DNA of 64,000 nucleotides from positions 8,980,998-9,044,997 of the forward strand of contig NC_092374.1 in NCBI RefSeq assembly GCF_030028105.1, written 5' to 3'. How positions within the stretch are numbered: position 1 is the stretch's first letter; every line of letters begins with the position of its first letter. The notes beneath the pieces were generated by a model that had not been told where the DNA came from, did no database searches, and worked only from the letters and a program-made list of their open reading frames with translations. The position numbers and the translations under genes were made by a program. The DNA comes from Mobula birostris (taxonomy: Eukaryota). Below, in pieces: positions 25,791 to 63,960 of the stretch.

Positions 25791-25876
25791 TTGCTATGCA
25801 TGTATCAAACTTGTTTCCATATCGATAAAAACCCACGGGGAGTGTATAGCCAATTGGATGAAAGGGGGGCAGGAAG

Positions 25877-26012
25877 NNNNNNNNNNNNNNNNNNNNNNNN
25901 NNNNNNNNNNNNNNNNNNNNNNNNNNNNNNNNNNNNNNNNNNNNNNNNNNNNNNNNNNNNNNNNNNNNNNNNNNNNNNNNNNNNNNNNNNNNNNNNNNNN
26001 NNNNNNNNNNNN
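25877..26012. other. Assembly gap (136 N) in a GA-rich simple-repeat region
   Basis: N run; the matching interval of the paralog (~62090-62226) is of similar length. Confidence 0.98.
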
Positions 26013-26491
26013 GAGAGCGACGGAGAAAGAGAGAAAGAGAGACAGCGAGAATGAGAGAGAGATAGAACGTGCATGAGTGAGATTGCGCCTGGGAGAAAGA
26101 GCAAAAGAGAGAGACAGAGCGTGAAAGAGAGAACGTGAGATAGTTGCATTTGTGACATAGATTTCAGATCAAAGGGGAATGACTATGGACCAGATCCAGT
26201 CCATCCAGAGGTAGGGCAGGAAGCTCTTCCTCTCACTGAGGTAGGTGGATTCTAGTTTCCCTTCTGTTTCTTTTTTCTGTAGTTGGACTCTCTCCACACC
26301 TGATAGGAGAATTTATAAATTGTGATGAGTGGATGTTTCCATGAGCCGTTGCATTTGTGCTCAGAACCAAGGGGCTGACAGGACGTAAAATAGATATGGG
26401 CCATCAGTATGGTGGAACTGGGTTAATGGACTGAATGGCCTCTGAAATGTCCCAGACCCAGGAAGGATGGACCACTCACTGGATTTATCAC

Positions 26492-26851
26492 CTTTCTTCA
26501 AAGACCAGGCAACAAAAACAACCAAATTAACGACTGCTAAAGTGGACACTACAATGTAGCGAGCCAGCATCAAAGCACTTGTTCTCCTCTTGGCTAGGTG
26601 GATCTCGCGGGTGTCATTTCCGTGCTGATTCGCAGCCACACAGCGGTAGCTCCCTCTCGGCCTGGGCAGTACCAGCTTTCCCACACTCTCCAGATCTCCG
26701 GTGACTCTCATCTCGCTGCTGCTCATGGGCAGTGTGCTGTTCTCAAGGTCAATCCACGTGATGTTTGCAGGGGGGTTCCCTTCAGCCTTGCACACGAGGG
26801 TGGCTCCAGTATCATCAGTCACAAGAGTTAGACTCAGGATGGTGGCCGGGA
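26492..26851 (-). CDS. Ig C2-set plus transmembrane exon, paralog A (Siglec-15-like); no upstream V exon found
   Basis: Acceptor cccccaag, donor G/gtgata, 360 nt, phase 1-1. Reads LVCKAEGNPPANITW...GSYRCVAANQHG, then TM LMLARYIVVSTLAVVNLVVFVAWSLKK. Confidence 0.85.
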
Positions 26852-33400: not shown

Positions 33401-33617
33401 ACGTAATTTATATACCTTTTTCAGGCGCTGCCGGTTTTCATTCCTAAATCCTTTTTTGATTCTCTTGACTCTATTATATCTTCTTATATGTGGAAGAGTA
33501 AGCGTTCTAGATTAAATAAAATTCATCTTCAAAATGATAAGATGAATGGAGGATTAGCCTTAACAAATTTTAGATTTTATTTTTTTTATTTTATTTTATT
33601 CTTATCTTAGATTTTAT

Positions 33618-35477
33618 CCCCCCTTGTTCAATCCCTTCCGACCTATGTTCGTGACACTTCTCACGCTCTTAAACTTTTCGATGATTTTAAGTTCCCTGGC
33701 CCTCACCGCTTTATTTTCACCATGGATGTCCAGTCCCTATATACTTCCATCCCCCATCAGGAAGGTCTCAAAGCTCTCCGCTTCTTTTTGGATTCCAGAC
33801 CTAATCAGTTCCCCTCTACCACCACTCTGCTCCGTCTAGCGGAATTAGTCCTTACTCTTAATAATTTCTCCTTTAGCTCCTCCCACTTCCTCCAAACTAA
33901 AGGTGTAGCTATGGGCACCCGTATGGGTCCTAGCTATGCCTGCCTTTTTGTTGGCTTTGTGGAACAATCTATGTTCCGTGCCTATTCTGGTATCTGTCCC
34001 CCACTTTTCCTTCGCTGCATCGACGACTGCATTGGCGCTGCTTCCTGCACGCATGCAGAACTCATTGACTTTATTAACTTTGCCTCCAACTTTCACCCTG
34101 CCCTCAAGTTTACCTGGTCCATTTCCGACACCTCCCTCCCCTTTCTAGATCTTTCTGTCTCTGTCTCTGGAGACAGCTTATCCACTGATGTCTACTATAA
34201 GCCTACTGAGTCTCACAGCTATCTGGACTATTCCTCTTCTCACCCTGTCTCTTGCAAAAACGCCATCCCCTTCTCGCAATTCCTCCGTCTCCGCCGCATC
34301 TGCTCTCAGGATGAGGCTTTTCATTCCAGGACGAGGGAGATGTCTTCCTTTTTTAAAGAAAGGGGCTTCCCTTCTTCCACTATCAACTCTGCTCTTAAAC
34401 GCATCTCCCCCATTTCACGTACATCTGCTCTCACTCCATCCTCCCGCCACCCCACCAGGAATAGGGTTCCCCTGGTCCTCACCTACCACCCCACCAGCCT
34501 CCGGGTCCAACATATTATTCTCCGTAACTTCTACCACCTCCAACGGGATCCCACCACTAAGCATATCTTTCCCTTCCCCCCCCCCCTCTCTGCATTCCGC
34601 AGGAATCGCTCCCTACGCAACTCCCTTGTCCATTCGTCCCCCCCCCCCCCCATCCCTCCCCACTGATCTCCCTCCTGGCACTTATCCGTGTAAGCGGAAC
34701 AAGTGCTACACATGCCCTTACACTTCCTCCCTTACCACCATTCAGGGCCCCAAACAGTCCTTCCAGGTGAGGCAATACTTCACCTGTGAGTCGGCTGGGG
34801 TGACATACTGTGTCCAGTGCTCCCGATGTGGCCTTTTATATATTGGCAAGACCCGACGCAGACTGGGAGACCGCTTTGCTGAACATCTGCGCTCTGTCCG
34901 CCAGAGAAAGCAGGATCTCCCAGTGGCCACACATTTTAATTCCACATCCCATTCCCATTCTGACATGTCTATCCACGGTCTCCTCTACTGTAAAGATGAA
35001 GCCACACTCAGGTTGGAGGAACAACACCTTATATTCCGTCTGGGTAGCCTCCAACCTGATGGCATGAACATTGACTTCTCTAACTTCTGCTAATGCCCCA
35101 TCTCCTCCTCGTACCCCATCTGTTACTTATTTTTATACACTCTCACTCTCCTTTTTCTCCCTCTGTCCCTCTGAATATACCCCTTACCCATCCTCTGGGT
35201 CCCCCCGCCCCTCTTTGTCTTTCTTCCCGGACCTCCTGTCCCATGATCCTCTCGTATCCCTTTTGCCTGTCACCTGTCCAGCTCTTGGCTCCATCCCTCC
35301 CCCTCCTGTCTTCTCCTATCATTTTGGATCTCCCCTCCCCCTCCAACTTTCAAATCCCTTACTCACTCTTCCTTCAGTTAGTCCTGACGAAGGGTCTCGG
35401 CCTGAAACGTCGACTGCACCTCTTCCTAGAGATGCTGCCTGGCCTGCTGCGTTCACCAGCAACTTTTATGTGTGTTG
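33618..35477 (+). mobile_element. 5'-truncated Penelope-like element nested in L1
   Basis: RT GVAMGTRMGPSYA, LRCIDDC; GIY-YIG; hammerhead repeat; 12-bp TSD cttagattttat at 33606-33617 and 35478-35489. Confidence 0.93.
35380..35415 (+). ncRNA. Minimal type-I hammerhead ribozyme motif in the Penelope terminal repeat
   Basis: agtc-CTGACGA-agg[gtctcgg]cct-GAAAC-GTC-gact: stem I agtc/gact, stem II agg/cct, palindromic ACGT stem III. Confidence 0.7.
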
Positions 35478-35800
35478 CTTAGATTTTATTATTGGGCAGT
35501 TAATATAAGAAATCTTACATTTTGGTTATACTATATAAATCAAGAGGATTGCCCGATGCAGGTTTTCTTAGAAGCTAATTCTGTTAATAAATTCTCTATT
35601 ATTTCTCTTCTTGGATCCTCACTTCCTTTATCTTTGAGTAAGTTAACTGATAATCTGGTAGTTAAACACACTATGAGGATTTGGATACAATTCCGAAAAT
35701 ATTTTGGCTTATTGACATCTTCTCTTCCGAGTTCAATTTTTTCTAATTTTTTTTTTAAACTCTCTATGATTGATGTGGCTTTTAAAGAATGGGATAGATT

Positions 35801-44894: not shown

Positions 44895-46030
44895 GGAAAG
44901 GAAATGATGAGTAATGTCTTTAGCCAGAGAGTGGTGAATCTGTGGAATTCATTAGCACAGACTGCTGTGGAAGCCAAGTCATTGGGTACATTTAGACCAG
45001 ATGAACATAAGAGATTGGAGTAGAATGAGGCCATTCCACCCATTGAGTCTGTATTGCAAATTCATGATGGCTGATCCATTTTCCCGCTCAAATCCATTCT
45101 CTTTACTTCTCCCTGTAACCTTTCATGCCCTGTCTAATTAATAACCTATGAATTCCACTTAAGTACTCCAAATAACCTGGCTTCCACATCCACTCTGTTT
45201 CCTCAGCACTACCTGCCCCTCCGCCTATCTTCATCCTATCTACAAACTTGGCCACCAAGCTATCTATTCCATCATCCGAATCTTTGACACAGTCCCGAAA
45301 CCGACTCCTGTGGAACAACACTAGTCACTGGGAACCAATCTGAAAAGGCAAGAAGCATTTGCCAAGAACAATTATGGTCAAAGATCATGAAAATCATGCC
45401 AGGGTTAAATTCGGGAACATTTCAAGGAGCAGAATTGTAGGGATTTAGGAGTCCTGCTCCACACACCCTTCCGTAGCAGAATCACTCTGCCCAGTTTGAG
45501 TATGGAAAGAGGAATCATGCCCAGATGATAAACAGGAAAATACAAGTGTTACATAGTCCACCCGCCCAGTAGAAAAGACCTGTACAGGAAAGCTTTCTCA
45601 CCTTTGTGTCTTTGACAGGTTCCCATCAGCATGGATGCTGTTTTGATCCAGATAGCGAGTGGTGTGAAATGGCATGGGGTTTGGGGGGGGTGGAGGTGCG
45701 GATGGGATGGGGAGGGATCTGCTTTCACATTGAGGATATTCTTGATAAAGAAGAGCTGAACACAAATACGTAATTAATCACCATCTCTTCCAGTGTTACT
45801 CCCCAGAAGCCTCCCTCTGAAGTCAGCTGTGTTGTAAACAGTAGTGTGTGGGATCTACTCCGGACTGCATGCTGAGTGGTTGCATCAGAGTTTGGTACAA
45901 AGCCTTCAATGCACAGGATCGCAAGAGGCTGCAGAGGGTTCTAGAGTTTACAGGTTCCTTCCCTGCATCGAAGACATCATCTTTAAAATGTTATTTTGCA
46001 ATCAACGTTTATGTTGCAATCTTTAGTTTA
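44895..46030. mobile_element. CR1 remnants (44895-45010 +, 45010-45320 -) and a Rex1-like remnant (~45850-46030 +)
   Basis: RVVNLWNSL; IDSLVAKFVD; QDRKRLQRV. Confidence 0.65.
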
Positions 46031-46159
46031 CTTTGTATTTGATCATAAATAATGACTAACAACAATTTTGCTTGTTCCTTCCTTAAACTGCAAGGAGTCT
46101 TTTTTCCACCGAGCCTGCAAAGAGACCAGTGGTGCTTGAGAGCTTACCGAGAGAAGAGA

Positions 46160-46208
46160 ATGCTATTCTTTCTACTTAGCGCTATTGTCCTGGGTATCTC
46201 TGCAATGT
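46160..46208 (+). CDS. Signal-peptide (leader) exon of the Siglec-15-like gene B: MLFFLLSAIVLGISAM
   Basis: ATG at 46160, 16 mostly hydrophobic codons plus 1 nt, perfect phase-1 donor T/gtaagt. Joins the 56216 exon in frame (TCC=Ser). Confidence 0.7.
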
Positions 46209-46354
46209 GTAAGTATCTTGAAATAAAAAGCAGTGAATGGTTTTTCTGACTGTCTTATCTGTGAAAAGTGTAGGAGCTGGAATGAGTTCGGAGTGGCAAC
46301 TGAGCAGGTTCAATTATGGGTCTCATGGACACACACAGTCTTTCAGAATCTGTG

Positions 46355-46357
<3 letters not shown>

Positions 46358-46410
<53 letters not shown>
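46358..46410 (+). repeat. (TG)n microsatellite
   Basis: Perfect dinucleotide run 150 bp into the predicted intron 1. Confidence 0.97.
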
Positions 46411-46413
<3 letters not shown>

Positions 46414-46444
46414 AAGGAAAACTTGAAAAATCTAATTAGAATGT

Positions 46445-48985
46445 AATGGTTGGAGTCACCAAGGCTGAAGCCTGTTCTACAGCAGTTATAATGGGTGACT
46501 TCAATCTACATGTAGATTGGGTGAACCAAATTGGTAAGGGTGCTGAGGAAGAGGATTTCTTGGAATGTATGCAGGATGGTTTTTTGAACCAACATGTCGA
46601 GGAACCAACTAGAGAGCAGGCTATTCTAGACTGGGTATTGAGCAATGAGGAAGGGTTAATTAGCAAGCTTGTCGTGAGAGGCCCCTTGGGTAAGAGTGAC
46701 CATAATATGGTGGAATTCTTCATTAAGATGGAGAGTGACATATTTAGTTCAGAAACAAAGGTCCTGAACTTAAAGAAGGGTAACTTTCAAGGTATGAGAC
46801 ATGAATTAGCTAAGATAGACTGGTAAATGACACTTAAAGGATTGACGGTGGATATGCAATGGCAAACACTTAAAGATCGCATGGATGAACTACAACAATT
46901 GTTCATCCCAGTTTGGCAAAAGAATAAATCAGGGAAGGTAGTGCGCCTGTGGCTGACAAGGGAAATTAGGGATAGTATCAATTCCAAAGAAGAAGCATAC
47001 AAATTAGCCAGAAAAAGTAGCTCACCTGAGGACTGGGAGAAATTCAGAGTCCAGAAGAGGAGGGCAAAGGGCTTAATTAGAAAGGGGGACAAAAGATTGA
47101 GAGAAAGCTGGCAGGGAAATAAAAACTGACTGTAAAAGCTTTTATAGATATGTGAAAAGAAAAAGATTGGTTAAGACAAATGTAGATCCCGCACAGACAG
47201 GAACAGGTGAATTGATTATGGGGAGCAAGGACATGGCAGACCAGTTGAATAACTACTTTGGTTCTGTCTTCACTAAGGAGGACATAAATAATCTCTGGAA
47301 ATAGTAGGGAACAGAGGGTCCAGTGAGATGGAGGAACTGAGGGAAATACGTGTTAGTAGGGAAGTGGTGTTAGGTAAATTGAAGGGATTAAAGGCAGATA
47401 AATCCCCAGGGCCAGATGGTCTGCATCCCAGAGTGCTTGAGGAAGTAGCCCAAGAAATAGTGGATGCATTAGTGATAATTTTTCAAAACTCTTTAGATTC
47501 TGGCCTAGTTCCTGAGGATTGGAGGGTGGCTAATGTAACTCCACTTTTTAAAAAAGGAGAGAGAGAGAAACCAGGGAATTATAGACCGGTTAGCCTAACA
47601 TCGGTGGTGGGGAAACTGCTAGAGTCAGTTATCAAAGATGTGACAACAGCACATTTGGAAAGCGGTGAAATCATCGGACAAAGTCAGCATGGATTTGTGA
47701 AAGGAAAATCATGTCTGACGAATCTCATAGAATTTTTTGAGGATGTAACTAGTAGAATGGATGGGGAGAACCAGTGGATGTGGTATATTTGGATTTTCAA
47801 AAGGCTTTTGACAAGGTCTCACACAGGAGATTAGTGTGCAAACTTAAAGCACACGGTATTTGGGGTAAGGTATTGATGTGGATAGAGAATTGGTTGGCAG
47901 ACAGGAAGCAAAGAGTGGGAATAAACGGGACCTTTTCAGAATGGCAGGCAGTGACTAGTGGGGTACCGCAAGGCTCAGTGCTGGGACCCCAGCTGTTTAC
48001 AATATATATTAATGACTTAGATGAGGGAATTAAATGCAGCATCTCCAAGTTTGCGGATGACACAAAGCTGGGCGGCAGTGTTAGCTGCGAGGAGGATGCT
48101 AAGAGGATGCAGGGTGACTTGGATAGGTTAGGTGAGTGGGCAAATTCATGGCAGATGCAATTTAATGTGGATAAATGTGAAGTTATCCACTTTTGTGGCA
48201 AAAACAGGAAAACAGATTATTATCTGAATGGTGGCCGATTAGGAAAAGGGGAGGTGCAACGAGACCTGGGTGTCATTATACACCAGTCATTGAAAGTGGG
48301 CATGCAGGTACAGCAGGCGGTGAAAAAGGCGAATGGTACGCTGGCATTTATAGCGAGAGGATTTGAGTACAGGAGCAGGGAGGTACTACTGCAGTTGTAC
48401 AAGGCCTTGGTGAGACCACACCTGGAGTATTGTGTGCAGTTTTGGTCCCCTAATCTGAGGAAAGACATCCTTGCCATAGAGGGAGTACAAAGAAGGTTCA
48501 CCAGATTGATTCCTGGGACGGCAGGACTTTCATATGATGGAAAGCTGGATGAACTAGGCTTACACTCGTTGGAATTTAGAAGATTGAGGGGGGATCCAAT
48601 TGAAACGTATAAAATCCTAAAGGGATTGGACAGGCGAGATGCAGGAAGATTGTTCCCGATGTTGGGGAAGTCCAGAACGAGGGGTCACAGTTTGAGGATA
48701 AAGGGGAAGCCTTTTAGGACCGAGATTAGGAAAAACTTCTTCACACAGAGAGTGGTGAATCTGTGGAATTCTCTGCCACAGGAAATAGTTGAGGCCAGTT
48801 CATTGGCTATATTTAAGAGGGAGTTAGATATGGTCCTTGTGGCTAAAGGGATCAGGGGGTATGGAGGGAAGGCTGGTGCAGGGTTCTGAATTGGATGATC
48901 AGCCATGATCATACTGAATGGCGGTGCAGGCTCGAAGGGCCGAATGGCCTACTCCTGCACCTATTTTCTATGTTTCTATGTTTCT
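46445..48985 (+). mobile_element. 5'-truncated CR1 (APE end plus RT) in predicted intron 1
   Basis: MGDFN, LGKSDH, KSPGPDG, PQGSVLGP, FADDTK; (ttctatg)n tail. Confidence 0.93.
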
Positions 48986-49689
48986 GCGCCCTTCGTCTCT
49001 GGAGGGAGAGATTTTCTCCCGAGTGGAGTTGTAGGGCGGTGTGATCCTGGCACTGCGAGTGAGAGATTTTGAAGTTGGAACAGACTCTGGGTGATTCCTT
49101 CAGGAAAGGGGGTCGTGGCCGGGCGGATTACCAATAGTGTCTCTGATAGAAACGTTCAACACCGGAATTGGTGAGGGCTAAAGGAAGAGGAAATTTCAGT
49201 GTGAGGGTCACTGAAGCTGGAAGCACGGGTAGATAAGGTTAAGGAGGCAGACAGGAAACTGGCCTTCATTATCCAGTGCATAGAGTATGAAAGCAGAGAG
49301 GTTACGGTACAAATGTATCAACTATTGGGTTAGCCACTTGCTCTGTGTGCACGTCTGATCACAACTGACAGGGAGGACACAATTGTCCCGGAAACGCTGT
49401 AGAGGAGACTCAACACTCTGTCTCCTGAGATGGAGCATTGGGTGACATCGTTCAAGTTGAAGTTTGATTACAGTTTACCCATACATAAACACCTCCAAAC
49501 AGAACAGCATTACTCGGGGGCAAGGTGCGAAACACAGTACCAACACGCTCACACAGCACAAGGCACATATAAGATAGAAAGCACATATAAGATATCAGTA
49601 AAATATAGACACTCAAAAAATATATCGTCCAAGACCATGAATGTTGCAGCACTCTCCAGTTGAACACAGTTTAGCTTGTCTTCTGCAGA

Positions 49690-50080
49690 GCGAACACGAG
49701 GGGTTGCTGGTGGTGGGGGGACATTTCTGATTGCAGTTTGGGCGCCGCGCACACAGCCCTCGGCACTCCGGTGGGGCACACGGACTCAAACGCCTCTCTC
49801 CTGGGCAGCCGTAAATAGGCGACACCGGGTCTTGTCCTCGCGATGACTGTGGTCACCCAGCTCCCCCGAAAATAAATCACTGAATCGGACTTGCAGCATT
49901 CCACTTTAACAATGTCCAGCGGGGTCTTGCGATCACAAGTAAAGCGACAAAGACCGACACTCGCTGTTGGACTGCACACTTTCACGCAGCGACCCCTGCC
50001 ACCCGGCTCTAACAGCAGGCAGCAGCACGATCCCCATCAGCAGGGAAAACTGCTGAGACGGGGGTCACTGGAGAGACATT
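49690..50080 (-). pseudogene. Decayed Ig V-set domain, B7/butyrophilin-type, with a preceding hydrophobic leader-like stretch
   Basis: Composite of frames: LLMGIVLLPAVRAG...SVGLCRFTCDRKTPLDIVKVE(C for W)CKSDSVIYFRG...KTRCRLFTAAQERG.*VRVPHRSAEG..VCAA. Contains stops and frameshifts. Confidence 0.5.
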
Positions 50081-50639
50081 GCTGTTGTTAGTGAGGGGAC
50101 TCAGCGTTCAGTGATTCACTTTTATATCAAAGACAGTAGGAAGAGACGGAGTAAAACCTTTCTCAATATCTGGTGACCGATAGTGAGGTGGGAAAGTGAT
50201 CTGGGACCCGGCACAGCGAGTCTGCAAAGGGACCGAGAGAGAGGCAGGAGAAGAAGGTACAGATGGATACAGTATAATGAGGGAGAAAGCTGCTTGTTTG
50301 AAGAACAGAACAGAATGCAGTGATGCAGCGAGTAAATGCGGGTGTACGGACGGGTCTGGTCTGTTTTTTCCCGGCACAGAGAGGAAATAGAAAGCTGAAA
50401 ATGTTGGAAAGCCTCAGTCTACGGCATCAGATCGCGAGTGCGCATGTGCCCGATCGACAGCACTGTGGAGAGATTTGGCTGTCGGTTTGAGCTGATTGGG
50501 GACTTCAGAAAGGGCAAGACAGTTGAACATGAACCAATCGTCACAGAGGGATCAGAAGTGGAGAGCGAGTGAGCAATCTCAAGTTCTTGGGTGTCAAAAT
50601 CTGTTAGGATCTAACGCGGGTCCAAAATACCGAGCGATG

Positions 50640-52395
50640 CAGCAAGACAGTGGCTATATTTCATGAGGAGTTTGAGGAGATTTTGTCTGCCACCTAAGAC
50701 ACAGGAAAACTCCTACAGCTGTACCGCGGAGAGCATTGTGCCTGGCTGATCATTGTCTGGCATGGTGTGGACTGGGCACAGCGTCGAAAGAAGCTACAGA
50801 GACTTGTAAAATTAGTCAGCTCCATCTTGTGTATTGGCCTCTGTAGTATCCAAGACATCTTCAAGGAGCGGTGGGTGAGAAAGTTACGCCCATTATGAAG
50901 GACGCCCATCATCCAGGACCCGGCCTCTTCTCCATATGACCATATAACAATCACAGCACGGAAACAGGCCATCTCGCCCCTTCTAGTCCATACCGAACGC
51001 TTACTCTCATCTAGTTCCACCGACCTGCACTCAGCCCATAACACTCCATTCCTTTCCTGTCCATATAGCTATCCAATTTTACTTTAAATGACAATATCAC
51101 ACCTGCCTCAACCACTTCTGCTGGCAGCTCGTTCCACACAGCTACCACTCTCTGAGTAAAGAAGTTCCACTCATGTTACCCCTAAACTTTTGCCCCCTAT
51201 CTCTCAACTCATGTCCTCTTGTTTGAATCTCCCCTACTCTCAATGGAAAAAGCCTATCCACGTCAAATCTATCGATCCTCCTCATAATTTTAAATACTTC
51301 TATCAAGTCCCCCCTCAACCTTCTACGCTCCAAAGAATAAAGACCCAACTTGTTCAACCTTACTCTGTAACTTAGATGCTAAAATCCAGGTAACATCCCA
51401 GTAAATCTTCTCTATACTCTCTCGATTTTGTTGACATCTTTCCTATAATTCGGTGACCAGAACTGTACACAATACTCCAAATTTGGCCTTACCAATGCCT
51501 TGTACAATTTTAACATTACATCACAACTCCTATACTGAATGCTCTGATTTATAAAGGCCAGCATACCAAAAGCTTTCTTCACCACCCTATCCACATGAGT
51601 TTCCACCTTCAGGGAACTATGCACCATTATTCCTAGATCCCTCAGTTCTACTGCATTCTTCAATACCCTACCATTTACCATGTATGTCCTATTTTGATTA
51701 GTCCTACCGAAATGTAGCACCTCACATTTATCAGCATTAAACTCCATCTGCCATCTTTCAGCCCACTCTTCTAACTGGCCTAAATCTCTGTGCAAGCTTT
51801 GAAAACCTACTTCATTATCCACAACTCCACCTATCTTAGTATCATCTGCATACTTACTAATCCAATTTACCATCCTATCATCCAGATCATTAATGTATTT
51901 GACAAACAACATTGGACCCAGTACACCACAGGTCACCGGCCTCCAATCTGACAAACAGTTATCCACCACCACTCTCTGGCATCTCACATCCAGCCACTGC
52001 TGAATCCATTTTACTACTTCAATATTAATACCTAACGATTGAACCTTCCTAACTAACCTTCCATGTGGAACCTTGTCAAAGGCCTTACTGAAGTCCATAT
52101 AGACAACATCCACCACTTTACCCTCGTCAACGTTTCTAGTAACCTCTATAAAAATTCAACAAGATTTGTCAAACCTGACCTTTCACTCACAAATCTATGA
52201 TGACTGTTCCTAATCAGACCCTGTCTATCCAGATGATTATATATAACATCTCTAAGAATACTTTCCATCAATTTACCCACCACTGATGTCAAACTCAAAG
52301 GTCGATAATTGCTAGATTTATTCTTAGAACCCTTTTTAAACAATGGAACAACATAAGCAATACGCCAATCCTCCGGCACCATCCCCATTTCTCAT
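50640..52395. mobile_element. Rex1-like remnant (~50640-50935 +) and CR1 (~50940-52395 -)
   Basis: DFSKAFDKVPHGRL, YADDTK, LVRPNLEYC on the - strand. Confidence 0.85.
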
Positions 52396-52464
52396 TCTTT
52401 CTGTCAGGAAGGAGGTACAAAAGCCTGAAGGCACACACTCAGAAATTAAGGCACAGCTTTATAA

Positions 52465-55400
52465 ACCCAAATAATCTGATTTTATGAGAATCCAAATCTT
52501 TAGCCATTACAGAGAGTAGACATTGATGTTGAATTTACCTCCGAACCCGTACCCGAGAGTCATGGAGTCTTGTCTGTTATGGTACACAACTGACCATGCC
52601 AGTTTCTGGAGAGTAGACGCTCTGACTCTCCAGATTATGGCTAGCTTGCATGGCTCCTTTAAAGACTTAGGGCTGCCCTGCCAATTCGTGGCCAAGTATT
52701 GGCGCCAGGATTTTAATATTTAAAGAGAACCTGAACTGAGATTCAGTGCTCAATCATCATTTCAACTTTGGACTCTCATCTTGCATCTCGTTTCTAACCC
52801 TGTTCTTATCTCAGTCTCATATGATGTGTCGATTCTAGTCTCAGATATTCCAACACAAGGGTCCAAACCATCCTTGCCATGGTCTCTTGTCACAATCTCA
52901 CTGGGAAACTTACTCTTCACCCCATCAAGTTCATGCAAAAAAATGCACCCACTGACATTACATCTTCATTGATCTCAATTCATTTTCCTCACACTCCCCA
53001 CAATTCTCCCAGTTTCTATTTCTCACCTACACAAGGGCAGTTTAGAAAAGACAGTTAAATAACAACCCACTTCTTCTGGATTTGTGTGGAGGGTCTGAGT
53101 AGAGACACATCATTTCATCATGTTTATTCATTTCCATAGATGCTGCCTGACCTGCTGAGTTCCTCCAGCATTTTGTGAGTGTATGTCTACATCTGCTCCA
53201 CTGTGTGTAGCCATGTCTTACTGTCAGGTAATTCATTGGAGGGAGCTTCCAGGGAAGTGATGTAAATACGAGGTCTCTCTCTCACCTCAGCTTAGAGCTG
53301 TGAGAACCATGGCTCCAGTGAAGAGCTAGCATGGCACAGGCAAGGAGAACCTCCTTGGGTTCACAGCCTCCCTTGTTCTATTTCTCTGCACTTTTGATCT
53401 CTCGGAAAGTGACACTGCACAACACTGTCATAATTCAGCCCCCTTTCAACAGGGCAGAGACTCAGGGTGGGCACATAAATCACCCATGATGGAATGATGG
53501 AGCAGAGTCGATGGGCCAAATGGTCTAGTTCTGCTCCTGTGCCTTATAGTCTTAGCACAACACTGTCGAGGGGTATACTCCCTGCCACCCGACCACTCGT
53601 GTCGATTAATTTATTTGTTACATGTACATCAAAACATACAGTGAAATGTGTCATTTGCGCCAATGACTAACACAGTCGGAGGATGTGCTGGAAGCCGCTT
53701 GCACGTAAGGCGTCACTTTACAGTACCAGTGACACAGATTCAGTTCCCACTGCTGCCTGTAAGGAGTTTGTACTTTCTCCCTGTGACCACGTGGGTTTCC
53801 TCCCACAGTCCAAAGACCTGCTGGTTAGTGGGTTAGCTGGTCATTGTAAATTGCCCCATGATTAGGCTTGGATTAAATTGGCGGTTTGCTGGGTGCCATG
53901 GCTCGAAGGGCCTTTTTTCACGGTATCTCAACAAATAAATAAAAAGTAACGCCATGTCCCAGCGCCAACATGGCATGTTCATAACTCACTAACCCTAACT
54001 GGTATGGCTTTGGAGTGTGGAGGGAAACTGGAACACCCAGAGGAAACCCACAGTTTCAGGGTGTTTGAGAGACAGGGTGAATGTACAAGCTCCTGAGAGA
54101 AGGAGGCAGGAATTGAATTCTGAACACTCACACTGTGCAGCATTGTGCTAACCACTATGTCACCGTGCTGCCCTTTCAAATCTGCTCTGATGTCAGTCAG
54201 TTATACTGGGACGTGGTGAAGTGGCCAAACTGTATTGAGAGAGAAAGAGAGAACATTGGCAGGCCAGGTTCCTGTACAGATGGGAAGTGGAAAATGTTAT
54301 CTGCAGTCAGAATTCCAAAATCTTGTTGGTGTTGAAAAAAGCTTGTTCTGCTTGCAAGGATGAGAGCCAGATGGGAGATCAGTGGACAGGTGTGAAGGGA
54401 CAAGGGAGTCACGTGGGAAGTTCTCCATAACTTCCACCATCTCCAACAGGATCCAACCACCAAGCACAGCTTTCACTCCTTCCCACTTTCAGCCTTCCGC
54501 AGGATTGCTCCCTATGTGACTCCCTTGTCAATTCATCCCTCCCCACTGATCTCCCTCCTGGCACTTATCATTGCATTGAACTTGCATTGAACCCAGGGGT
54601 TCTCTCTTCACCACAGTGGCATCTTCCTCAATCAGTATTACTGTTCAGTCTGTTGTCCTTTTCTCCTTTCTGAACATCTTCCTTCCAGGAATATCGAGTG
54701 CCCAGCCCTACCATTACTGTGAAAGATGCTGGTAGTCATTGTTACATCTTGTTTTCACACAGCCATTTCTGCCTTTGACTCACCAGCCCCGCTCAAGAAC
54801 CTTCTGTCTACACTTGCTTCTCCAGTTACATCTGCCACTCCCAATTCTTTATTCATCTTCATTGTCTTTCTGTTGTCACCTGCCCAATTAGTTCAACCTT
54901 TCCCCCACCACATCAGTGACCCTCTCCCTGATACCCGCTCATCTTGCAAGGGTTTCTCCTGCCCCAAAACTGGTCCAACACCCTACAATTAGAGCAGTAA
55001 CATTTCAAGGAGCCCTCAAGTGTTCTAAAGATCTTTATGGTGGAGCAGATGAGACATAAACACAAATAATCTGATTTTATGAGAATGCAAATCTTTAAAC
55101 ATTCCAGAGAGTAGACACTGATGATAGATTTACCTCCGAACCCATACCCGAGAGTCATGGAGTCTTGTCTGTTATGGTACACAACTGACCATGCCAGTTT
55201 CTGGAGAGTAGACACTCTGACTCTCTGGATTATGGCTAGCTTGCATGGCCCCTTTAAAGACTCAGGGCTGCACTGCCAATTGGTGGCCATGTATTGACGC
55301 CAGGATTTTAATATTTAAAGAGAACCTGAACAGAGGGTCAGTGCTCAATCACTATTTCAACTTTGGATTCTCATCTTGCATCTCACTGAGAACCCTGTCC

Positions 55401-56150
55401 TTGTCTCAGCCTCATATCCTGTGTTGATTCTAGTCTCGGATACTCCAGCACAAGGGTCCAAACCATCCTTGGCATGGTCTCTCGTTACAATATTACTGGG
55501 AAACTTACTCTTCACCCCATCAAGTTCATGCGAAAAAATGCACCCACTGACATTACATCTTCATTGATCTCAATTCATTTTCCTCACATTCCCCACAATT
55601 CTCCCAGTTTCTATTTCTCACCAACACACGGGCGGTTTAGAAAAGTCAGTTAAATAACAACCCACTTCTTCTGGATTTTTGTGGAGGGTCTGAGTAGGAG
55701 AAGCATCATTTCATCATGTTTATTCATTTCCATAGATGCTGCCTGACCTGCTGAGTTCCTCCAGCATTTTATGAGTGTATGTCTACATCAGCTCCACTGT
55801 GTGTAGCCATGTCTTACTGTCAAGTAATTCATTGGAGGGAGCTTCCAGGGAAGTGATGTAAATACGAGGTCTCTCTCTCACCTCAGCTTAGAGCTGTGAG
55901 AACCATGGCTCCAGTGAAGAGCTAGCATGGCCCAGGCAAGGAGAACTTCCTTGGGTTCACAGCCTCCCTTGTTCTATTTCTCTGCGCTTTTGATCTGTTG
56001 CAGAGTGACACTGCACAACACTGTCATAATTCAGCCCCCTTTCAACAGGGCAGAGACTCAGGGTGGGCACATAAATCACCCATGATGGAATGATGGAGCA
56101 GAGTCGATGGGCCAAATGGTCTAGTTCTGCTCCTGTGCCTTATAGTCTTA
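52465..56150 (+). repeat. Local direct duplication: ~52465-53554 and ~55060-56150
   Basis: Collinear, roughly 90% identical ~1.1-kb units about 2.6 kb apart. Confidence 0.92.
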
Positions 56151-56215
56151 GGACATGGGTCCTCTAGTGTCTGTGGCCTCAGCTCAGCATTAATACCACA
56201 CCTCTGTCTTCACAG

Positions 56216-56596
56216 CCACTGATAATAATGGATGGACCATGGAAATTCCGGACAAGGTGACAGGGAGAGAAGGGAAGTCCTTGTTTCTGTTTTGCTTTTT
56301 CGCTCCCCCTTTCAATGAATACAAGGGGAACATCAGCATCATCTGGAAGAATGCGAAGGGAAACGTGACATTTTTACATTACACCAATTATCCATCAGCA
56401 CATGGGTTTGAAAATCACATTTGGAACAACAAAGACAGTCGCTACCAAATTCTGGGGAACCCACGGAAGAACGATGCTTCAATAGTCATCAAACAACTGA
56501 GGAGCAACGAGAATGGAAAGGGATTCTGTTGTCAAATTGATTTCACAGAAGAATCAACAGGAAAATGTGAAGAAGGTATTCGAACCAAAATAACAG
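56216..56596 (+). CDS. Ig V-set exon 1, Siglec-15-like
   Basis: Acceptor ctctgtcttcacag, donor G/gtgagg, 381 nt, phase 1-1. Reads GWTMEIPDKV...LFC...ISIIWK...YQILGNPRKNDASIVI...FCCQIDF. Confidence 0.88.
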
Positions 56597-59496
56597 GTGA
56601 GGAGCAGAATCATTGCATCTGAATTCTGTTGAAGTAAAGAGATCACTGACCTCCCCCATCACTCAGTGTATTCTCCACCACTCCTGAGATCTGGGTGTCA
56701 TGAGCAGGGCTGGCAGTTGTTGTCCATTCCTGTGTCTGCTCGGGTACATCAGAGGACAATAGCATGTTGGAATGCACTCACATCTGCAAAAGAGAATTTC
56801 AGAAAGAAATTGGGAGGGAGTAAAAATGGGATTTGAAATGTTGGCAGTCAGTATAAAGGACATTCCATAATGATTGACAGGTTTATTGGAAGTAAGAGAA
56901 TGGCTAAGAAATGAGAAGATTCCTTCAGGGACGTAAAGGGAAACCTGTCAGAGATGAGTTGGGTTCCATGTAAATGAAGACTTCTTATTGGTTTCCACCA
57001 GAGGGAATGACATGGAGGGTGGAGAGTTAGGGGAAGAGTACACTGAGCCTTTGGAACATGTCTCTATAAGGAAGGAGGAGATTTCACTTATATATTTTAT
57101 TTAGCGATAAGGCTCAGAACAGGCCTTTCCTGCCCAAGGAGCCACACCATCCAGCAACACACCTATTTAACACTAGCCTCATCACAGGACAATTTACAGT
57201 GACCAACTAGTGTATGAAGCAGTCTGTCTTTGGACTGTGGGAGGAAACAGGAGCCCTGAGGGAAACCCACGTGGTTCGCGGGGAGAATGTACACACCCCT
57301 TACCAATGGAGCTGGAATTGAGCTCTGAACTCTGGAACACCCCAAGCTGTAATAGCATCACGCTAACTGCTAGACCTCTATGGTGTTGGCACACATTAAC
57401 GTGAACAAATCCCCAGGGCCTGATGGGATTTTCTCAGGATGCTATGAAAAGCAAGGGAGAAGACTGAGGCTCCACATTCGTTCCTACATCTTCATGAGAA
57501 ACACCTGCAGTCCCAAACGGCAGTCGAATAGATAATGCTCTTTCTTTAAACTACACACCACTCAGCCTTACATCAGTAGTCTTGAACTGATGGGAAAAAG
57601 TTCTGAGAGACAGCATAAATGTTCACCTGGAAAGGCACGGACTGATAGACACAAGTCAACATGCTTTAGTTCAGTGGAAATGATTTGTTACAAATCCGAG
57701 TAATTTGAGCTAAGAAGGCCGATGATGGCAGGGCAGTAAACATGTTTTACATGGACTTGAGCAAAGGTCTAGAACAAGTTACAAACGCTAGTCTAGTACA
57801 GAAAGTTAGGGCAGATGGCTTCCAAAGTGTTTTTTTAAATATTTTCTCTTCAGTGATAAGCATGGTAACAGGTCCTTCTGGCTGAATAAGTCTGTTCCAC
57901 TCAGTTACACCCATGTGGCTAATTAACCTGCTAACCTGTACGTCTATGGACGGTGACTGTGGGAGGAAACTGATACCTTGGTGGAAACTCACACAGTCAT
58001 GGGGAAAACATACAAACTCCTCACAGATAGCAATGAAATTGAACCCTGGTCCCTGGCACTAATAGCATTACGCTCACCGCTACGCTCTTGTGTTTGGCAA
58101 ACTGGATCCAAACTTCACTTGTTCGGAGACAGAGTGTAGTGGCTGAGCAAAGTTTTTTGACTGCAAGTCTGTAACCAATGGTGTATCTCAGGGACCAGTG
58201 CCTGGACCACTGTTGTTTGTCATACATATTTTATATGTGATTAACTTGGATGAGAATGCAGAAGGATTGTTCAAGAAATTTACTGATCATACTAAACTAG
58301 AGGAGCAGTATGTTGTGAGGAATGTCTTGAAAGGGACATAGTTAAGTTGGAAAAATTGGCAGAGCAGTGATAGAAGAACTTAATAACTGTTAGGTAATGC
58401 ATTCTGCCCCTCGTTCTTCTCTGTCTTCCATGGTCCACTCTCCTCTCCTCGCAGATTCCTTCTTCAGCCCTTTACCTTTTCCACTTATCACCTCACTTCA
58501 TCCTCCTCCCCACTTCCACCTGGTCTCCTCTATCATCTGCTGACTTTACTCCTTCGCAGACCTGCCTTCTTATTCTGGATTCTACCCCCTTCCGTTCCAG
58601 TACTGCTGAAGGATCTTGTCCCAAAACATTGACCGTTTATCTTTTTCAATATGATGCAGCCTGACCTGCTAAGTTCCCTAGGATTTTGTGTGTGCTATTC
58701 CAGCATCGAATACAATAAAACTGTATTGTTGTTGCTCAAAGTCAACGAGATTGTGGTGCTGCTCCAGTCCGTGCAAAACACATATTTACAATGTATACAG
58801 TATGACTGATTTTTTCAAACATCCCGTACTAGTGATTTCCTTCGTCCACAATGCTCAAAGTCCATTGGCAAGTCAGGGTGAAGCATTTGTCACGTGAACA
58901 ATGGCCCTCTTCACTCACTCTCTCCCCTCCCTGGCAGAACAAGGAGTTTCTTTGCCTCTAATGCCCCTCCTCTTTCCCTTTGGAGCAAGGAGTGTATTTG
59001 CTCCCTATTTTTCCATCCTGGAGAGGATTGGATAAGACAGAGGGAATATGTCTGAAAGGGTGAGAAGGTTTTTGATGAGATCTCTGGTTGGTGAATGAAG
59101 GGAGAAAGCTGGAGGGAGAGCACAAAAAGTGGTAGATATTTGAGCTGCAAGATGCCAACCAGAGCTCCAGAGTTACCCAGTAGATCAGGCAGAGGCCGTG
59201 TAGAGTACAACTGAACCAATAGAGCAGGAGTGGCCCATCCTGATACAAACCGAGAGAACTAGTTTGCTGAGACAGTTGTATTCACGAACACTCCATCTTG
59301 TGCACACATGGCTGAGGTGCTGTTTCCCAAGATTATAATGGGCTTCGTTAGAACAGTGCACGAGCTCAGGGACAGATGAGTCAGAGTAGGAAGTAGATGA
59401 AGAATTAAACTCATTAGCAGGGATGAAATATTGTTCAATAAAATGTGGCGAATGCAATAAACTAATCCAGATTGTCCTTACATAAAGATGTCCAAG

Positions 59497-59850
59497 GTGC
59501 CAGATTATCACCAGTGACTGTAAAGGTGGGAGATTCTGCAACACTTCCCTGCAACTTCACACCTCCTGACAAGAAACCCAGTTCCATCGGTATCATCTGG
59601 ATGAAGGGGAATCTTCCAAATGTATCCATTGTCTTCAATCAGACTCGTTACCGCTCTGCCAACCGACCCTACGCCAACACTGTAAATGAGGGAGATCGAT
59701 ATGAGCTGGTGGGAAACCCAGAGCAGGGAAATGCCTCCATCAAGGTGACGGACCTCAGACTGAACGACAACAGCAAATATTTCTGTCATGTTTGGTTCAA
59801 GAATGCCAAAACAACAGTGATTCAGGATGAGACAAGCCTGCAGGTTGAGG
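59497..59850 (+). CDS. Ig V-set exon 2, Siglec-15-like; 5' boundary uncertain (59471, 59497 or 59515)
   Basis: VTVKVGDSATLPCNF...IIWMK...YELVGNPEQGNASIKVTDLRLNDNSKYFCHVWF; strong phase-1 donor G/gtgagt. Confidence 0.85.
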
Positions 59851-61248
59851 GTGAGTAAACATCTATCTCAGCATTCTGGGAACGATATAAACACATTGAA
59901 CTTTTGTCAGAAGAAATGAGCTTGCAGTGAGGAGCTGGGGCCGAGACTGGCTCAATCCCCTTGGGCTCCATTCCTAGTCCTGGGCTCCCCAACCCCCTCA
60001 CTCAGTACCGCCCCCAGTGGACAGAGACAGTGGATTCCAATCCAGGATAGGTGGAGCTTCCTGCCACAGGTTTAGAGGTTCAGACACTCATTTGGCTGCT
60101 GAATGACCAGACTGGCCTGAGCTATTTACATCTGTGTCTGGTATTAAAGACCCAGAAGCTTCTACAGACAATCACCAATCAGTTTCCACACTTAGAATTT
60201 GTCGTCATTCTCCTGATGGGTCTCTCCCATTCTTCACCTTTCCCAGAGCTGAGGGACTTTGTTCCCATGTACTCGAGAATAACGCTCCCCAAGTCACAGC
60301 CACAACCCTGGAGTTGTCCCTTGTAACTGATATTGTAATTGGAGGGATCTCCCTCTGCTCTGTCAAGGGTTTCCTGCTGTCCAATCGGCGTTTCAGTTCC
60401 CTATTCTGCCACTGAGATTACTGGCGCGGTGTTGCAAGGTCCACAGCCGACCTGGGTAACATTCATCCACCTTCAGCATGAACGGTCACCGTGGGAACCA
60501 TTACAATCAGGATCCAGTCTGCTTGCTGATGGAATATCTCACTCCAGTTTAGCTTACCACAGTAGTGTAGTGGTTTGCGTGATGCTATTACAGATTGGTG
60601 TGTCGGAGTTCAGAGTTCATGTCCAGTGTCCTCCGTAAGAGGTCTGTACGTCCTCCCTGTAGAATGCAAAGGTTTCCTCCAGGTGCCCTGGTTTTCTCCC
60701 TCGGGCCAAGATGTACTAATTAGTAGGTTAATTGTCCTGTGATTATGTTTGTGGTAAATTGGGGTTGTCAGGGTTTGCTGGGCGGTATGGCTGGAAGGGT
60801 GGAATGGCCTATTCCACACTGTATCTCTAAAATTACGTCTCTACCAAAGGGGGTGTAAGGAGCTCCGACCCTCTGCTCACCTGCAAATCACCCTCAGGCA
60901 AGGTGTAGAAGCCGGTTAGTCACCCTAACACCCCCACCCCCCAAATCTGGAGCAGGTGGTGGATGGTCGTACGAGCAGCTGGTGCAGATCACAAACCCTG
61001 GCTATTCAAACAATGACACCAAGCAGACAATCTCTGAAGAGTATTGATAATATCAGGGGTCACCCATCTTGTAAAGACACTTCCCAGAAGAAGGCACCTA
61101 GGCAGAAAACTTTGTGAAGACCAATCATGATCATGATACCATGATCACCCAGGTCCTGCGACACGTCACATAATGAAGTTGATGTTTTCTAAAATAAAAA
61201 TTGTCAAAATTTCAATGAATTTAATTTGATTTTCTTTCCTCCCCCAAG

Positions 61249-61608
61249 TCCCGGCCACCATCCTGAGTCTAACTCTTGTGACTGATGATACTGGAGCCAC
61301 TCTCGTGTGCAAGGCTGAAGGGAACCCCCCTGCAAACATCACGTGGATTGACCTTGAGAACAGCACACTGCCCATGAGCAGCAGCGAGATGAGAATCACC
61401 GGAGATCTGGAGAGTGTGGGAAAGCTGGTGCTGCCCAGGCCGAGAGGGAGCTACCGCTGTGTGGCTGCGAATCAGCACGGAAATGACACCCGCGAGATCC
61501 ACCTAGCCAAGAAGGGAACAAGTGCTTGGGTGCTGGCTCGCTACATTGTAGTGTCCACTTTGACACTCGTTCATCTGGTTGTTTTTGTTGTCTGGTTTTT
61601 GAAGAAAG
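61249..61608 (+). CDS. Ig C2-set plus transmembrane exon, paralog B
   Basis: Acceptor ttttctttcctcccccaag, donor G/gtgagc, 360 nt, phase 1-1. TM WVLARYIVVSTLTLVHLVVFVVWFLKK. Confidence 0.88.
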
Positions 61609-62219
61609 GTGAGCTGTCCAGTGATTGGTCCATTCTTCCAGGGTCTGGGACATTTCACAGAGGGGGATAGACACAGAGGCCATTCAGTCCCATAACCCAG
61701 TTCCACCATAATTGTATGATGGCCCATATCTACTTAACCTTCTGTCAGCCCCCTTTGTTCTGGGCACAAACGCATCGGCTCATTGAAATATACATTCATC
61801 GCAATTTATAAATTCTCCCATTAGATGTGGAGAAAGTCCATCTCCAAAGAAAAGAAACAAAATTTATAAGCATGTCCACTTACCTGACTGGGAGGAAGAG
61901 CTTCTTGCCCTACTTCTGGATGGACCGGGTCTGGTCTATACTAAGTCCCTTTTGATCTGAAATCTGTGTCACAAATTGAACTGTCACACTTTCTCTCTCT
62001 CAGAATTTCTCTCATTCATGCTCTGTCTCTTTTGCTCTCTCTCAGATACATTCTCTCTCTCATTTTCACTCACTCTCACTCTTCCTCGTGCTCTCACTTT
62101 CTTGCAGTCTCTCTCTCTCTTTCTCACACACTATCTCTCTGTCTCTTGCTCTCTCTCTCGGGAATGCTTTCTCATGCGTGTATTCTCTGCTACATGCACC
62201 ACATTCTCTCTCCCTTCAG

Positions 62220-62299
62220 CCCTTTACTTCCGCCGCCCTTTCGTCCAACTGGCTACGCGCTCCCCAAAGGTCCTTTTATCAATATTGAAACAAGTTTGA
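62220..62299 (+). CDS. Candidate short cytoplasmic-tail exon (ALYFRRPFVQLATRSPKVLLSILKQV*)
   Basis: Long CT-rich tract ending cttcag; phase-1 compatible. Paralog A has a homologous segment at 25805-25876 whose acceptor would lie in the gap and which differs by indels. Confidence 0.3.
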
Positions 62300-62309
62300 T
62301 GCATGCGAG

Positions 62310-63960
62310 GCAGCACACAATGCTCTGGAGGAAGTATGCAGGCCAGGCAGCATCTACAGACGGGAATAAACAGTCAATATTTCGGTCTGAGATCCTTCCT
62401 CAGGACTGCAAAGGAAAGGGAAAGGCGGTCCGAATAAGAAAGTTGGGGGAGCGGAGGAAGAAATCAGGTGATAGGTGAAACCAGGAGAGGGGGAAGGGAG
62501 CGGCATGGGGTGAAGCAAAGAGCTGGGAGAGGGTTAGAAAACCATGGAAGAAAGGAAAGGAGGAGGAGCAGCGGATGGAGATGATTGGCAAATAAGAAGA
62601 GAAGGTGTGGGAGGGAAAGAAAAATGGGGAATGGTGAACAAAAGGTGGGGAAAACAATTGCCGAAAGTTCGTGAAATTGATATTCATGTCATCAGGTTGG
62701 AGGCTATCCAGACAGAATATAATGTGTTTCTCCTCCAAACTGAGTGTGGCCTCATTGTAGTAGTAGAGGAGGCCATGGACTGACATGTTGAAATGTTAAT
62801 AGGAAGTAGAATTGAAATGGGTGGCTCCCGGGATATCCTCACTTTTCTGGCAGACAGAGTGTAGGAATTTGGCGAAATTGTCTCCTAATCTATATCGGGT
62901 CTCAGTAATATACAGGAGGCCACACCAGGAACAGTAGATGACACCAACTGACTCACGGATGAAGTGCTTCTTAACCTGGAAGATTGTGATTGAGGAGATC
63001 TAGGGGCAAACATGCCACTTGTTCTACTTCCAAGGAGAGGTGTCGGTGGGGAGATTGGTCAGGAGAGGTGAGTGGACAAGAGAGTTGTGTAGGGACCGAT
63101 CTCTGCGGCAAGTGTTTGCGAGAGAAAGATGTGCTTGGTGGTGTGATCCTGTTGGAGATAGTGGAGTTACAGAGAATTATATGCTGGATGCGAAGGCTTG
63201 TGGGGTGATAACTGAGGACAAGTGGAACACTATCCCTGGTGTGGCAATGGGAGGATGAGGTGAGGGCAGATGTGCACGAAATGCAAGAGATACAGGAGAG
63301 GGCAGCATTGAAGGTGGAGGAAGGGAAGCCCCGTTCTTTGAAGTAGGACATCTCAGTTCTTTCTAGAAGGTAAAGCTTCATCCTGCGATGCAGTGGATAC
63401 AGAGATCTGAGAAAAGGGAATGGCATTTTTACAAGAGATTGTTTGTGAAGAGGTATAGTCAAGACAGCTGTAAGAAACAATCAGTTTATAAAAGGTATCA
63501 GCAGATAGATTGTCTCCAGAGATAGAGAGATTGAGAAAGGGGAAAAAGGTGTCAGAAATAGACCAAGTGAGTTTGAGGGCAGGGTGGAAGTTGGAGCAAA
63601 ATTCATTAAATTGATGAGTTTAGCATCAGTGCAGGAGGCAGCTCCAATATTATCGTCAATGTAGTATTGGAAGAATTGGAGAGCAGTGCCGGTGTAGGCT
63701 TGGAAAATGAACTGTTCCACGTTGCCAATAAAAAGTCAGGTATAGCTGGGACCCATGCAAGTGCTGTGGTTATACCTTGGGTTTGAAAGAAGTGGAGGAG
63801 ATGAAGGAGAAATTGTTGAAGGCGAGGACCAGCACTGCCAGATGAAGGAGAGTGGCGGTGGAGAGGCACTAGTTGGGTCTGTTGTCCAGAAAGAAATGGA
63901 GAGCTTTAAAGTTTTCCTGATGGGAGATAGAAGTATATAGGGACTGGACATGCATACTGA
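62310..63960 (-). mobile_element. Old degraded Penelope-like element, probably the same insertion as 22140-25790
   Basis: RT/GIY-YIG remnants, hammerhead relic at 62371-62408, same junction position relative to the C2-TM exon as in paralog A. Confidence 0.82.

Follow-up and report, generated by a model that had tools for sequence, protein, structure and literature searches.

Near-identical C2 exons with divergent membrane anchors in a Siglec-15-like receptor cluster of the giant manta ray: a probable case of repeated gene conversion

How can neighbouring copies of an exon remain almost identical over the part that encodes an extracellular domain, and over the end of the intron in front of it, while the part that encodes the membrane anchor drifts apart? 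This question is raised by a stretch of 64,000 nucleotides (nt) from the giant manta ray, Mobula birostris (contig coordinates 8980998-9044997 in a 4.0-Gb genome; hereafter, the window), which sits in a cluster of Siglec-15-like receptor genes encoding two V-type immunoglobulin (Ig) domains, a C2-type Ig domain and a transmembrane (TM) segment (V-V-C2-TM). Comparison of the window with itself by BLAST reveals an inverted repeat (26014-27727 / 62120-60371, 88.9% identity), each arm of which carries a single 360-nt exon with an open frame (phase 1-1) that encodes a C2/I-set Ig domain followed by a short stalk and a TM helix. Copy B (61249-61608, plus strand) has an open frame bounded by AG at 61247-61248 and GT at 61609, matches the Pfam families Ig_3 and I-set, encodes a TM helix containing arginine and histidine, and aligns with the RefSeq model XP_072113536.1 at its residues 242-360. 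Copy A, on the minus strand at 26492-26851, has an intact frame and splice sites and shares 92% amino-acid identity with copy B. As detailed below, the best explanation of the pattern is, with good probability, repeated interlocus gene conversion in a cluster of paired receptors, involving these two copies and a third one located beyond the window.

We compared A and B by global alignment and sliding identity and then counted the differences by segment, in B coordinates (the aligned A coordinate is 88100 minus the B coordinate). The near-identical tract takes in the 177 intronic nt immediately before the exon together with the entire C2 coding part (61072-61512 in B; 26588-27028, minus strand, in A) and contains 5 mismatches in 441 nt, namely, 2 among the 177 intronic nt (61072-61248) and 3 among the 262 nt of the C2 part (61249-61510), at positions 61301, 61395 and 61430. 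It closes with an 82-nt identical run, after which the first mismatch, at 61513, falls in the last codons of the Ig domain. In the adjoining stalk/TM segment (61511-61608), which is divergent among all copies, 11 of the 98 nt differ; farther downstream, in the intron (61609-61963), 55 of 331 positions differ (16.6%), in addition to indels, and on the other side of the tract, at 60371-60967, 41 of 595 (6.9%). A preliminary description of this DNA had given closely similar values for the C2 domain, both introns and the more distant upstream part, and had placed the breakpoint at the boundary between C2 and stalk, where we find the step, only a few codons away from where the Ig domain ends; its approximately 13 differences in the stalk/TM part were an overcount, the divergence itself being real. 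Altogether, three strata of A-B divergence can be distinguished: 16-17% downstream of the exon, 1.1% in the tract, and 4-8% from 61071 back to 60371, where the similarity between A and B begins. The intermediate stratum (60371-61071; 4.1-8.4% by sub-segment) consists mostly of high-copy repeats.

A search of the whole genome with the exon identified a third close copy, C, on the plus strand at 9062032-9062385, 19 kb past the window, along with two distant members of the cluster (L004 and L005, with 56% and 38% amino-acid identity, respectively), and we added 40 kb beyond the window to align A, B and C. The C2 part differs by 1.1% between A and B, 1.9% between B and C and 1.5% between A and C, and the 177 intronic nt in front of it by 1.1%, 2.8% and 4.0%, respectively. 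For the same pairs, the p-distances in the stalk/TM segment are 0.112, 0.174 and 0.185, and the divergence of the downstream intron (61609-61963) is 16.6%, 16.4% and 13.7%. Thus, the C2 tract, at 1.1-1.9%, is a discrete segment that lies below both its 3′ flank (11-18%) and its 5′ flank (4-8%). In the downstream intron, no pairing of the copies is favoured (site-pattern counts of 21, 20 and 29), and within and just past the stalk/TM segment the informative sites group A and B against C at 61526-61573 and B and C against A at 61572-61673. Copy C carries a 6-nt deletion in its TM part. On the 5′ side, homology of C to A and B begins only at 60968, and a sensitive search found no homology between the C intron upstream of the equivalent of 60968 and A or B at 60371-60967; the 99% identical A-B tract starts about 100 nt inside that point. 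Given that the tract is common to A, B and C and that its 3′ limit is nearly the same in all pairs, the homogenisation is three-way.

In a likelihood-ratio permutation scan of the A-B profile, none of 300 shuffles was as extreme as the low-divergence block at 60386-61557, which remained significant (0/300) when the exon was removed, and the tract at 61072-61512 emerged as the best low-divergence segment nested within this block, matched by 1 of 300 shuffles. Neutral sites show the same contrast: when the intron at 61072-61248 and the synonymous C2 sites were set against the downstream intron, the Fisher test yielded P values of 3.6e-10 for A-B, 5.7e-8 for B-C and 3.9e-5 for A-C, and the proportion of synonymous differences (pS) in C2 is 0.032 for every pair, compared with a divergence of 0.14-0.17 in the downstream intron. 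The stalk/TM divergence between A and B, 11%, is near the neutral baseline of 15-17%, the ratio of nonsynonymous to synonymous differences (pN/pS) there being about 1.5, from 11 changes only. A stepwise profile that spans intron and synonymous sites alike is predicted by sequence exchange between paralogs and not by selection on the protein; in this respect, the gene-conversion signature proposed in the preliminary description held up, and protein selection as the cause of the tract was rejected.

More broadly, the tract could have evolved slowly in each copy without any exchange, through purifying selection on C2, an overlapping non-coding element or a mutational cold spot. Such an explanation would draw on the coding nature of C2, its low pN/pS (0.16-0.32) and the coincidence of the right limit with a protein-domain boundary. 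It has to contend, however, with synonymous sites and 177-280 nt of repeat-derived intron that are as alike as the replacement sites, and with a C2 domain that is far from frozen, given that 11-12 of its 87 residues differ from those of a stingray homolog and that L004 and L005 are so much less similar; moreover, selection at the protein level is unlikely to act on copy A, which, as discussed below, is an orphan exon. We therefore consider evolution without exchange highly improbable.

Under repeated gene conversion, by contrast, the copies would descend from an old duplication, as reflected in the divergence of about 15% in the flanking intron, and a segment of about 440-545 bp, comprising the entire C2 and the intronic sequence just before it, would have been overwritten repeatedly by non-reciprocal exchange, so that it is now 98-99% identical in all pairs. 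The tract is approximately the only uninterrupted stretch of three-way homology, bounded on the left at 60968 and on the right by the 11-18% diverged TM part and the 6-nt indel of C. It would then be heterology that halts conversion at the domain boundary, perhaps aided by selection against swaps between charged and neutral anchors.

What kind of genes, then, take part in the exchange? Homology of A to B extends from 27727 to about 22153, and tblastn searches with leader, V1, V2 and tail exon queries found none of these exons on the minus strand near copy A, which, judging by its exon content, is an orphan C2-stalk-TM exon and not a paralogous gene. Accordingly, of the head-to-head paralogs originally described, the orientation stands, with A on the minus and B on the plus strand facing each other, but the status of A as a gene does not. 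The TM arginine, in the motif LARY, is kept in both A and B, so that the difference between their TM segments is not a split between activating and inhibitory forms. An activating/inhibitory pair formed by A and B was rejected on these grounds, the shared arginine and the lack of other exons in A.

The old stratum of the A-B duplication extends beyond the exons, on the B side over 61609-63912 (plus strand), including the downstream intron and a transposon copy common to A, with 75-85% identity to, and in collinear order with, A at 26491-22153. On the A side (22153-26491, minus strand), it is broken by a 2.3-kb retroelement (23271-25578), located in the downstream intron of A and containing reverse-transcriptase-like open reading frames (ORFs; 23603-24969), and by a run of N (25877-26012). 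A long interspersed nuclear element (LINE) ORF1-like ORF is located just past the end of the A-B homology, and pieces of retroelements (23271-25578 and 27989-28414) occur on either side of copy A. The window contains another inverted pair, 12810-14413 / 33612-35480 (92-94% identity), whose repeat family is also represented at 22343-23270 and 62576-63558, as well as inverted matches at 18546-20143 / 30932-32474 and 20176-20820 / 28741-29387 that are roughly symmetric about 24-25 kb. The inverted matches around copy A reflect either a larger palindrome or merely transposons.

Copy B, on the other hand, belongs to a gene with a full set of exons. By tblastn, gene B comprises a leader from 46160, V1 at 56239-56595, V2 at 59487-59849 and the C2-TM exon at 61249-61608, all on the plus strand, followed, 4.5 kb downstream of the C2-TM exon, by a first tail exon at 9047167-9047214 (L007:2170-2217). 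Its tail comes to a stop after 17 residues because 1 nt that is present in C and in the stingray ortholog is deleted. With an arginine in the TM segment and a short tail, gene B is, by its predicted product, of the activating type; the tail deletion could signify either an activating receptor that is truncated yet functional or the onset of decay. Gene C has the same ectodomain exons as B, a neutral TM segment, with LALS where B has LARY, and a tail of 148 residues with four YxxV motifs (PIYSIV, PVYSIV, GLYSKV and AIYATV). The encoded proteins of B and C differ at 5 of 119 residues in V1, 5 of 121 in V2 and 2 of 87 in C2. Thus, B and C are two neighbouring genes with near-identical ectodomains, one of which, B, combines a charged TM segment (Arg and His) with a short, motif-free tail of 17 residues. 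The paired-receptor-like system postulated in the preliminary description fails for A and B but applies to B and C, in which the whole ectodomain part is homogenised while the TM segment and tail differ: B and C, and not A and B, are likely to have the anatomy of an activating/inhibitory pair. The net effect of the exchange would be that an activating-type and an inhibitory-type gene keep one ectodomain, with their signalling parts staying different.

Apart from the C2 tract, B and C share a 5′ block that encompasses the leader, V1 and V2 (46160-60369, plus strand, in B), with 90-99% identity between the two genes; BLAST matches within it include one of 4385 nt at 96.4% and one of 2674 nt at 98.95%. 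Near 46145, at the left margin of the block, identity climbs from about 60-78% to 95-98%. The leader-V1-V2 half of C lies at 9048172-9057151 (L007-L008), and the similarity covers about 14 kb of B. This block, much larger than the C2 tract, is embedded in an older tandem duplication that is about 60-80% identical on both sides. A degenerate orphan copy of the first tail exon is present at 45617-45700, about 500 nt upstream of the B leader, and the tail exon of B is likewise placed upstream of the C leader, which indicates that the limits of the tandem repeat unit do not coincide with those of the genes. The RefSeq model XP_072113536.1 (874 residues, 'uncharacterized protein') runs from the TM exon of B directly into the V1 exon of C; it fuses genes B and C, without the leader and tail of B, and should be split into two genes.

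The two homologies of gene B, to C on its 5′ side and to A on its 3′ side, meet at a sharp point. The similarity of B to the 5′ block of C stops at 60369, inside a second C2-like exon, and from 60371 onwards B matches A; the two junction sources overlap in a 6-nt microhomology, TCCTGC, at 60372-60377. In the C unit (L006), this second C2-like exon is complete but frameshifted, with one TGA and one TAA, and in B only a dead remnant of it is left, truncated at the junction (60294-60377, plus strand). The dead exon of the C unit lies in an intron of gene C at 9057069-9057359 (L008:2072-2362) and is 68% identical to the live C2, with a 1-nt deletion and stops; it is followed by an unused third V exon (L008:6003-6344), which shows 77% DNA identity to V2 over the surrounding ~650 nt. 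As read from these alignments, gene B is a chimera in which a recent copy of the C 5′ block is joined at 60370 to A-like sequence. The preliminary description had raised the option of a pseudogene feeding an active gene; the chimeric junction suggests such a transfer, and a pseudogene-like A as the donor to an active B is possible.

The junction also invites another history, in which A-like sequence corresponding to 60371-61512 was pasted into B in a single recent event, when the chimera formed, and C received its copy through one further event, with nothing ongoing and no function. The microhomology is located exactly where the homology to A begins, the 5′ block differs between B and C by 3.6%, nearly the same as A and B by the junction (4.1%), which suggests one event, and A is non-functional by its anatomy. 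Nevertheless, the single-event scenario is unlikely, given that A-B divergence falls into three levels and the nested tract is significant in the permutation scan, and that the involvement of C calls for at least 2-3 separate events. Even so, it still entails sequence exchange and differs from repeated gene conversion only in the number of events and the role of selection. Under repeated conversion, one event would have copied A-like sequence into B, initiated by homology in the C2 exon and terminated by microhomology, and a later exchange would have brought in C too; this order and the direction of the events are what we infer. A more specific version of this history, which we put forward only tentatively and consider rather doubtful, is that B is a young chimeric activating receptor, perhaps manta-specific, produced by templated repair that began in the C2 exon of A and ended in the dead C2 exon, that A serves as a germline donor cassette for an Arg-TM-linked C2 module, and that the tract limits are set purely by three-way homology. 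If the limits of the tract are indeed the limits of homology, the locus would show, in a natural setting, how much homology ectopic conversion requires in an elasmobranch.

Comparison with other species helps to separate the ages of the modules. A search of representative proteins was dominated by giant multi-Ig proteins and yielded seven useful matches. The closest protein outside the manta is P0153 of the stingray Hemitrygon akajei, a V-V-C2 receptor with a LARY membrane anchor and a short tail. In the stalk/TM part, hand counts of identical residues, small as the numbers are, give 26/33 for A and P0153, 24/33 for B and P0153 and 24/33 for A and B (a tool figure of 33/46 for B and P0153 also takes in tail exon 1), and the corresponding values are 18/31 for A and C and 27/44 for B and C. 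In C2, by contrast, the manta copies share 85-86 of 87 residues with each other but only 75-76 of 87 with the stingray. Forms with an Arg-TM and a short tail and forms with a neutral TM and a tail bearing ITIMs (immunoreceptor tyrosine-based inhibitory motifs) are both present in skates, sawfish and sharks, and hence the signalling modules predate the manta lineage. On this comparison, which involves few residues, the signalling modules appear to be old and the manta ectodomains young, the pattern expected of concerted evolution. Among the annotated proteins of Mobula hypostoma, no ortholog of B or C was found, only a 50%-identical gene with a lysine in its TM segment. Additional evidence comes from the sequencing run of a relative that is about 3% diverged, which includes a C-like V2 contig about as distant from B as from C, a contig of the tract whose 348 nt carry 4 private differences from all three manta copies, and an A-like contig that begins exactly at 60371; no B junction is present among its contigs.

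Several observations weigh against conversion in a receptor pair, and these have to be set beside the evidence above. The upstream intron alone yields no significant nested tract (52 of 300 shuffles), and the clustering of site patterns downstream of the exon is only marginal in a runs test for mosaic patterns (P = 0.06). The grouping of copies by species versus by paralog relies on the proteins of one stingray and one contig of the relative. The tail of C has no strict ITIM or immunoreceptor tyrosine-based switch motif (ITSM), none of its four motifs having I, V, L, S or T at position -2, unlike shark and skate homologs with strict motifs such as VIYATV and ILYSSV. Two small, probable RNA runs contain nothing B-specific; the contigs there, of V2 and C2-TM, are of the C type and end at predicted splice sites. 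The remaining points concern the sequencing run of the probable source animal, for which, as for all runs, the read evidence consists of de Bruijn contigs, that is, consensus sequences. In this run, the tract is represented by one contig (61072-61490), a majority consensus of the three copies, in which positions 61301 and 61395 read C and G, leaving the two private variants of B unconfirmed, and its depth of 13-16 (summed over contigs at 61227-61490) is 1.3-2 times that of the B-only flanks (6.5-10.8), with about 2.2 times expected for three copies. The low depth may reflect noise at low coverage, or the animal's two haplotypes may differ in copy number.

The same features of the tract contig, namely, the missing private bases and the low depth, would be accounted for if the copies were in truth more different, or fewer, and the tract had been written by consensus polishing or repeat collapse during assembly, particularly as the tract adjoins very high-copy repeats at 60531-61226. 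In every run examined, contig depth at these positions reaches 1e3-2e5, which implies that the upstream intron is built from high-copy repeats and that the tract is partly repeat-derived; the repeats in this intron include a tRNA-headed short interspersed nuclear element (about 60540-60800) and a second element (about 60830-61140). However, contigs of the probable source animal reproduce the unique flanks of B and the junction at 60370 exactly, and a contig from an M. birostris run (X1) bridges 60303-60583 with 0 differences. A divergent version of the tract, if it were real, would have shown up at 90% likeness, where no second version was found except for one short partial contig with indels. 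Furthermore, copy-specific differences, 3-5 per pair, persist inside the tract, which collapse would have erased, and the probable-RNA contigs join the C-specific 6-nt deletion to the common C2 sequence. In the assembly, the private tract bases, in B coordinates, are 61301T and 61395A for B, 61131A, 61183C and 61430A for A, and 61249G, 61491T and 61493T for C. Given this evidence, an assembly or polishing artefact seems very unlikely.

With regard to the family, V2 and C2 of the manta receptors align as one stretch to human Siglec-15 (PDB 7zoz; E 1.2e-15), the best single-stretch match among solved structures, with which they share the succession of V-set domain, C2-set domain and positively charged TM segment. 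In Siglec-15, R143 is the essential arginine of the F strand that binds sialic acid (PMC10264397); in the alignment with 7zoz, this position is occupied by histidine in the manta V2 (YFCHVWF). The architecture departs from that of Siglec-15 as well, which has a single V-set and a single C2-set domain and a positively charged TM segment that recruits DAP12/DAP10, in that the manta proteins are V-V-C2, with an extra N-terminal V domain, and C has an uncharged TM segment and a long tail. Furthermore, the arginine of A and B is near the outer end of the TM segment; a mid-membrane lysine is kept by the conserved Lys-TM branch of the ray family, which comprises different genes. Because of the extra V domain and of a TM segment with arginine or with no charge, the manta genes are best described, on the available alignments, as Siglec-15-like and not as Siglec-15 proper.

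Mammals provide well-documented cases of activating/inhibitory receptor pairs whose ectodomains are held similar by gene conversion, in the SIGLEC and CEACAM families, where they are read as a trace of pathogen pressure. The closest parallel is SIGLEC11 and SIGLEC16, primate paired receptors arranged head to head and maintained by gene conversion, which closely resemble each other across ~3 kb that include the exons of the N-terminal part (V-set and C2-set domains); there, conversion has been repeated, the non-functional SIGLEC16P has acted as a donor to SIGLEC11, and no motif marks the 3′ boundary (PMC5701461). As in the manta, neighbouring Ig-receptor genes are alike over extracellular exons and introns and differ in their signalling parts, with one partner of the inhibitory type, carrying tyrosine motifs in its tail, and the other adaptor-dependent, by prediction in the manta, and without tail motifs; even the head-to-head arrangement recurs in A and B. 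The manta case differs in that it comes from a cartilaginous fish and a Siglec-15-like family without the sialic-acid arginine, involves three copies, has B and C in tandem, with a single orphan exon as the head-to-head partner, and affects the membrane-proximal C2, the V domains being homogenised in the separate, larger block. A further difference is that ligand binding and co-expression have been demonstrated for SIGLEC11/16. SIGLEC5 and SIGLEC14 (PMC4042635) and the paired CEACAM of mammals and Xenopus (PMC2832619, PMC5112662) are further activating/inhibitory pairs under concerted evolution that have near-identical ligand-binding regions and a charged TM residue in the activating partner. 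In those pairs, however, the converted part consists of the N-terminal ligand-binding domains, for which pathogen ligands are known, whereas in the manta the lectin arginine is replaced by histidine.

In the literature, we found CEACAM pairs in Xenopus but no such case for cartilaginous fish or for the Siglec-15 branch. The event is of a known kind, conversion in a paired-receptor cluster, in a new lineage. The locus is also uncommonly easy to read: divergence falls into three strata, an orphan exon participates in the exchange, and the chimeric junction shows microhomology. It suggests that the same evolutionary device is at work in a ray, in a lectin-derived family that lacks the sugar-binding arginine.

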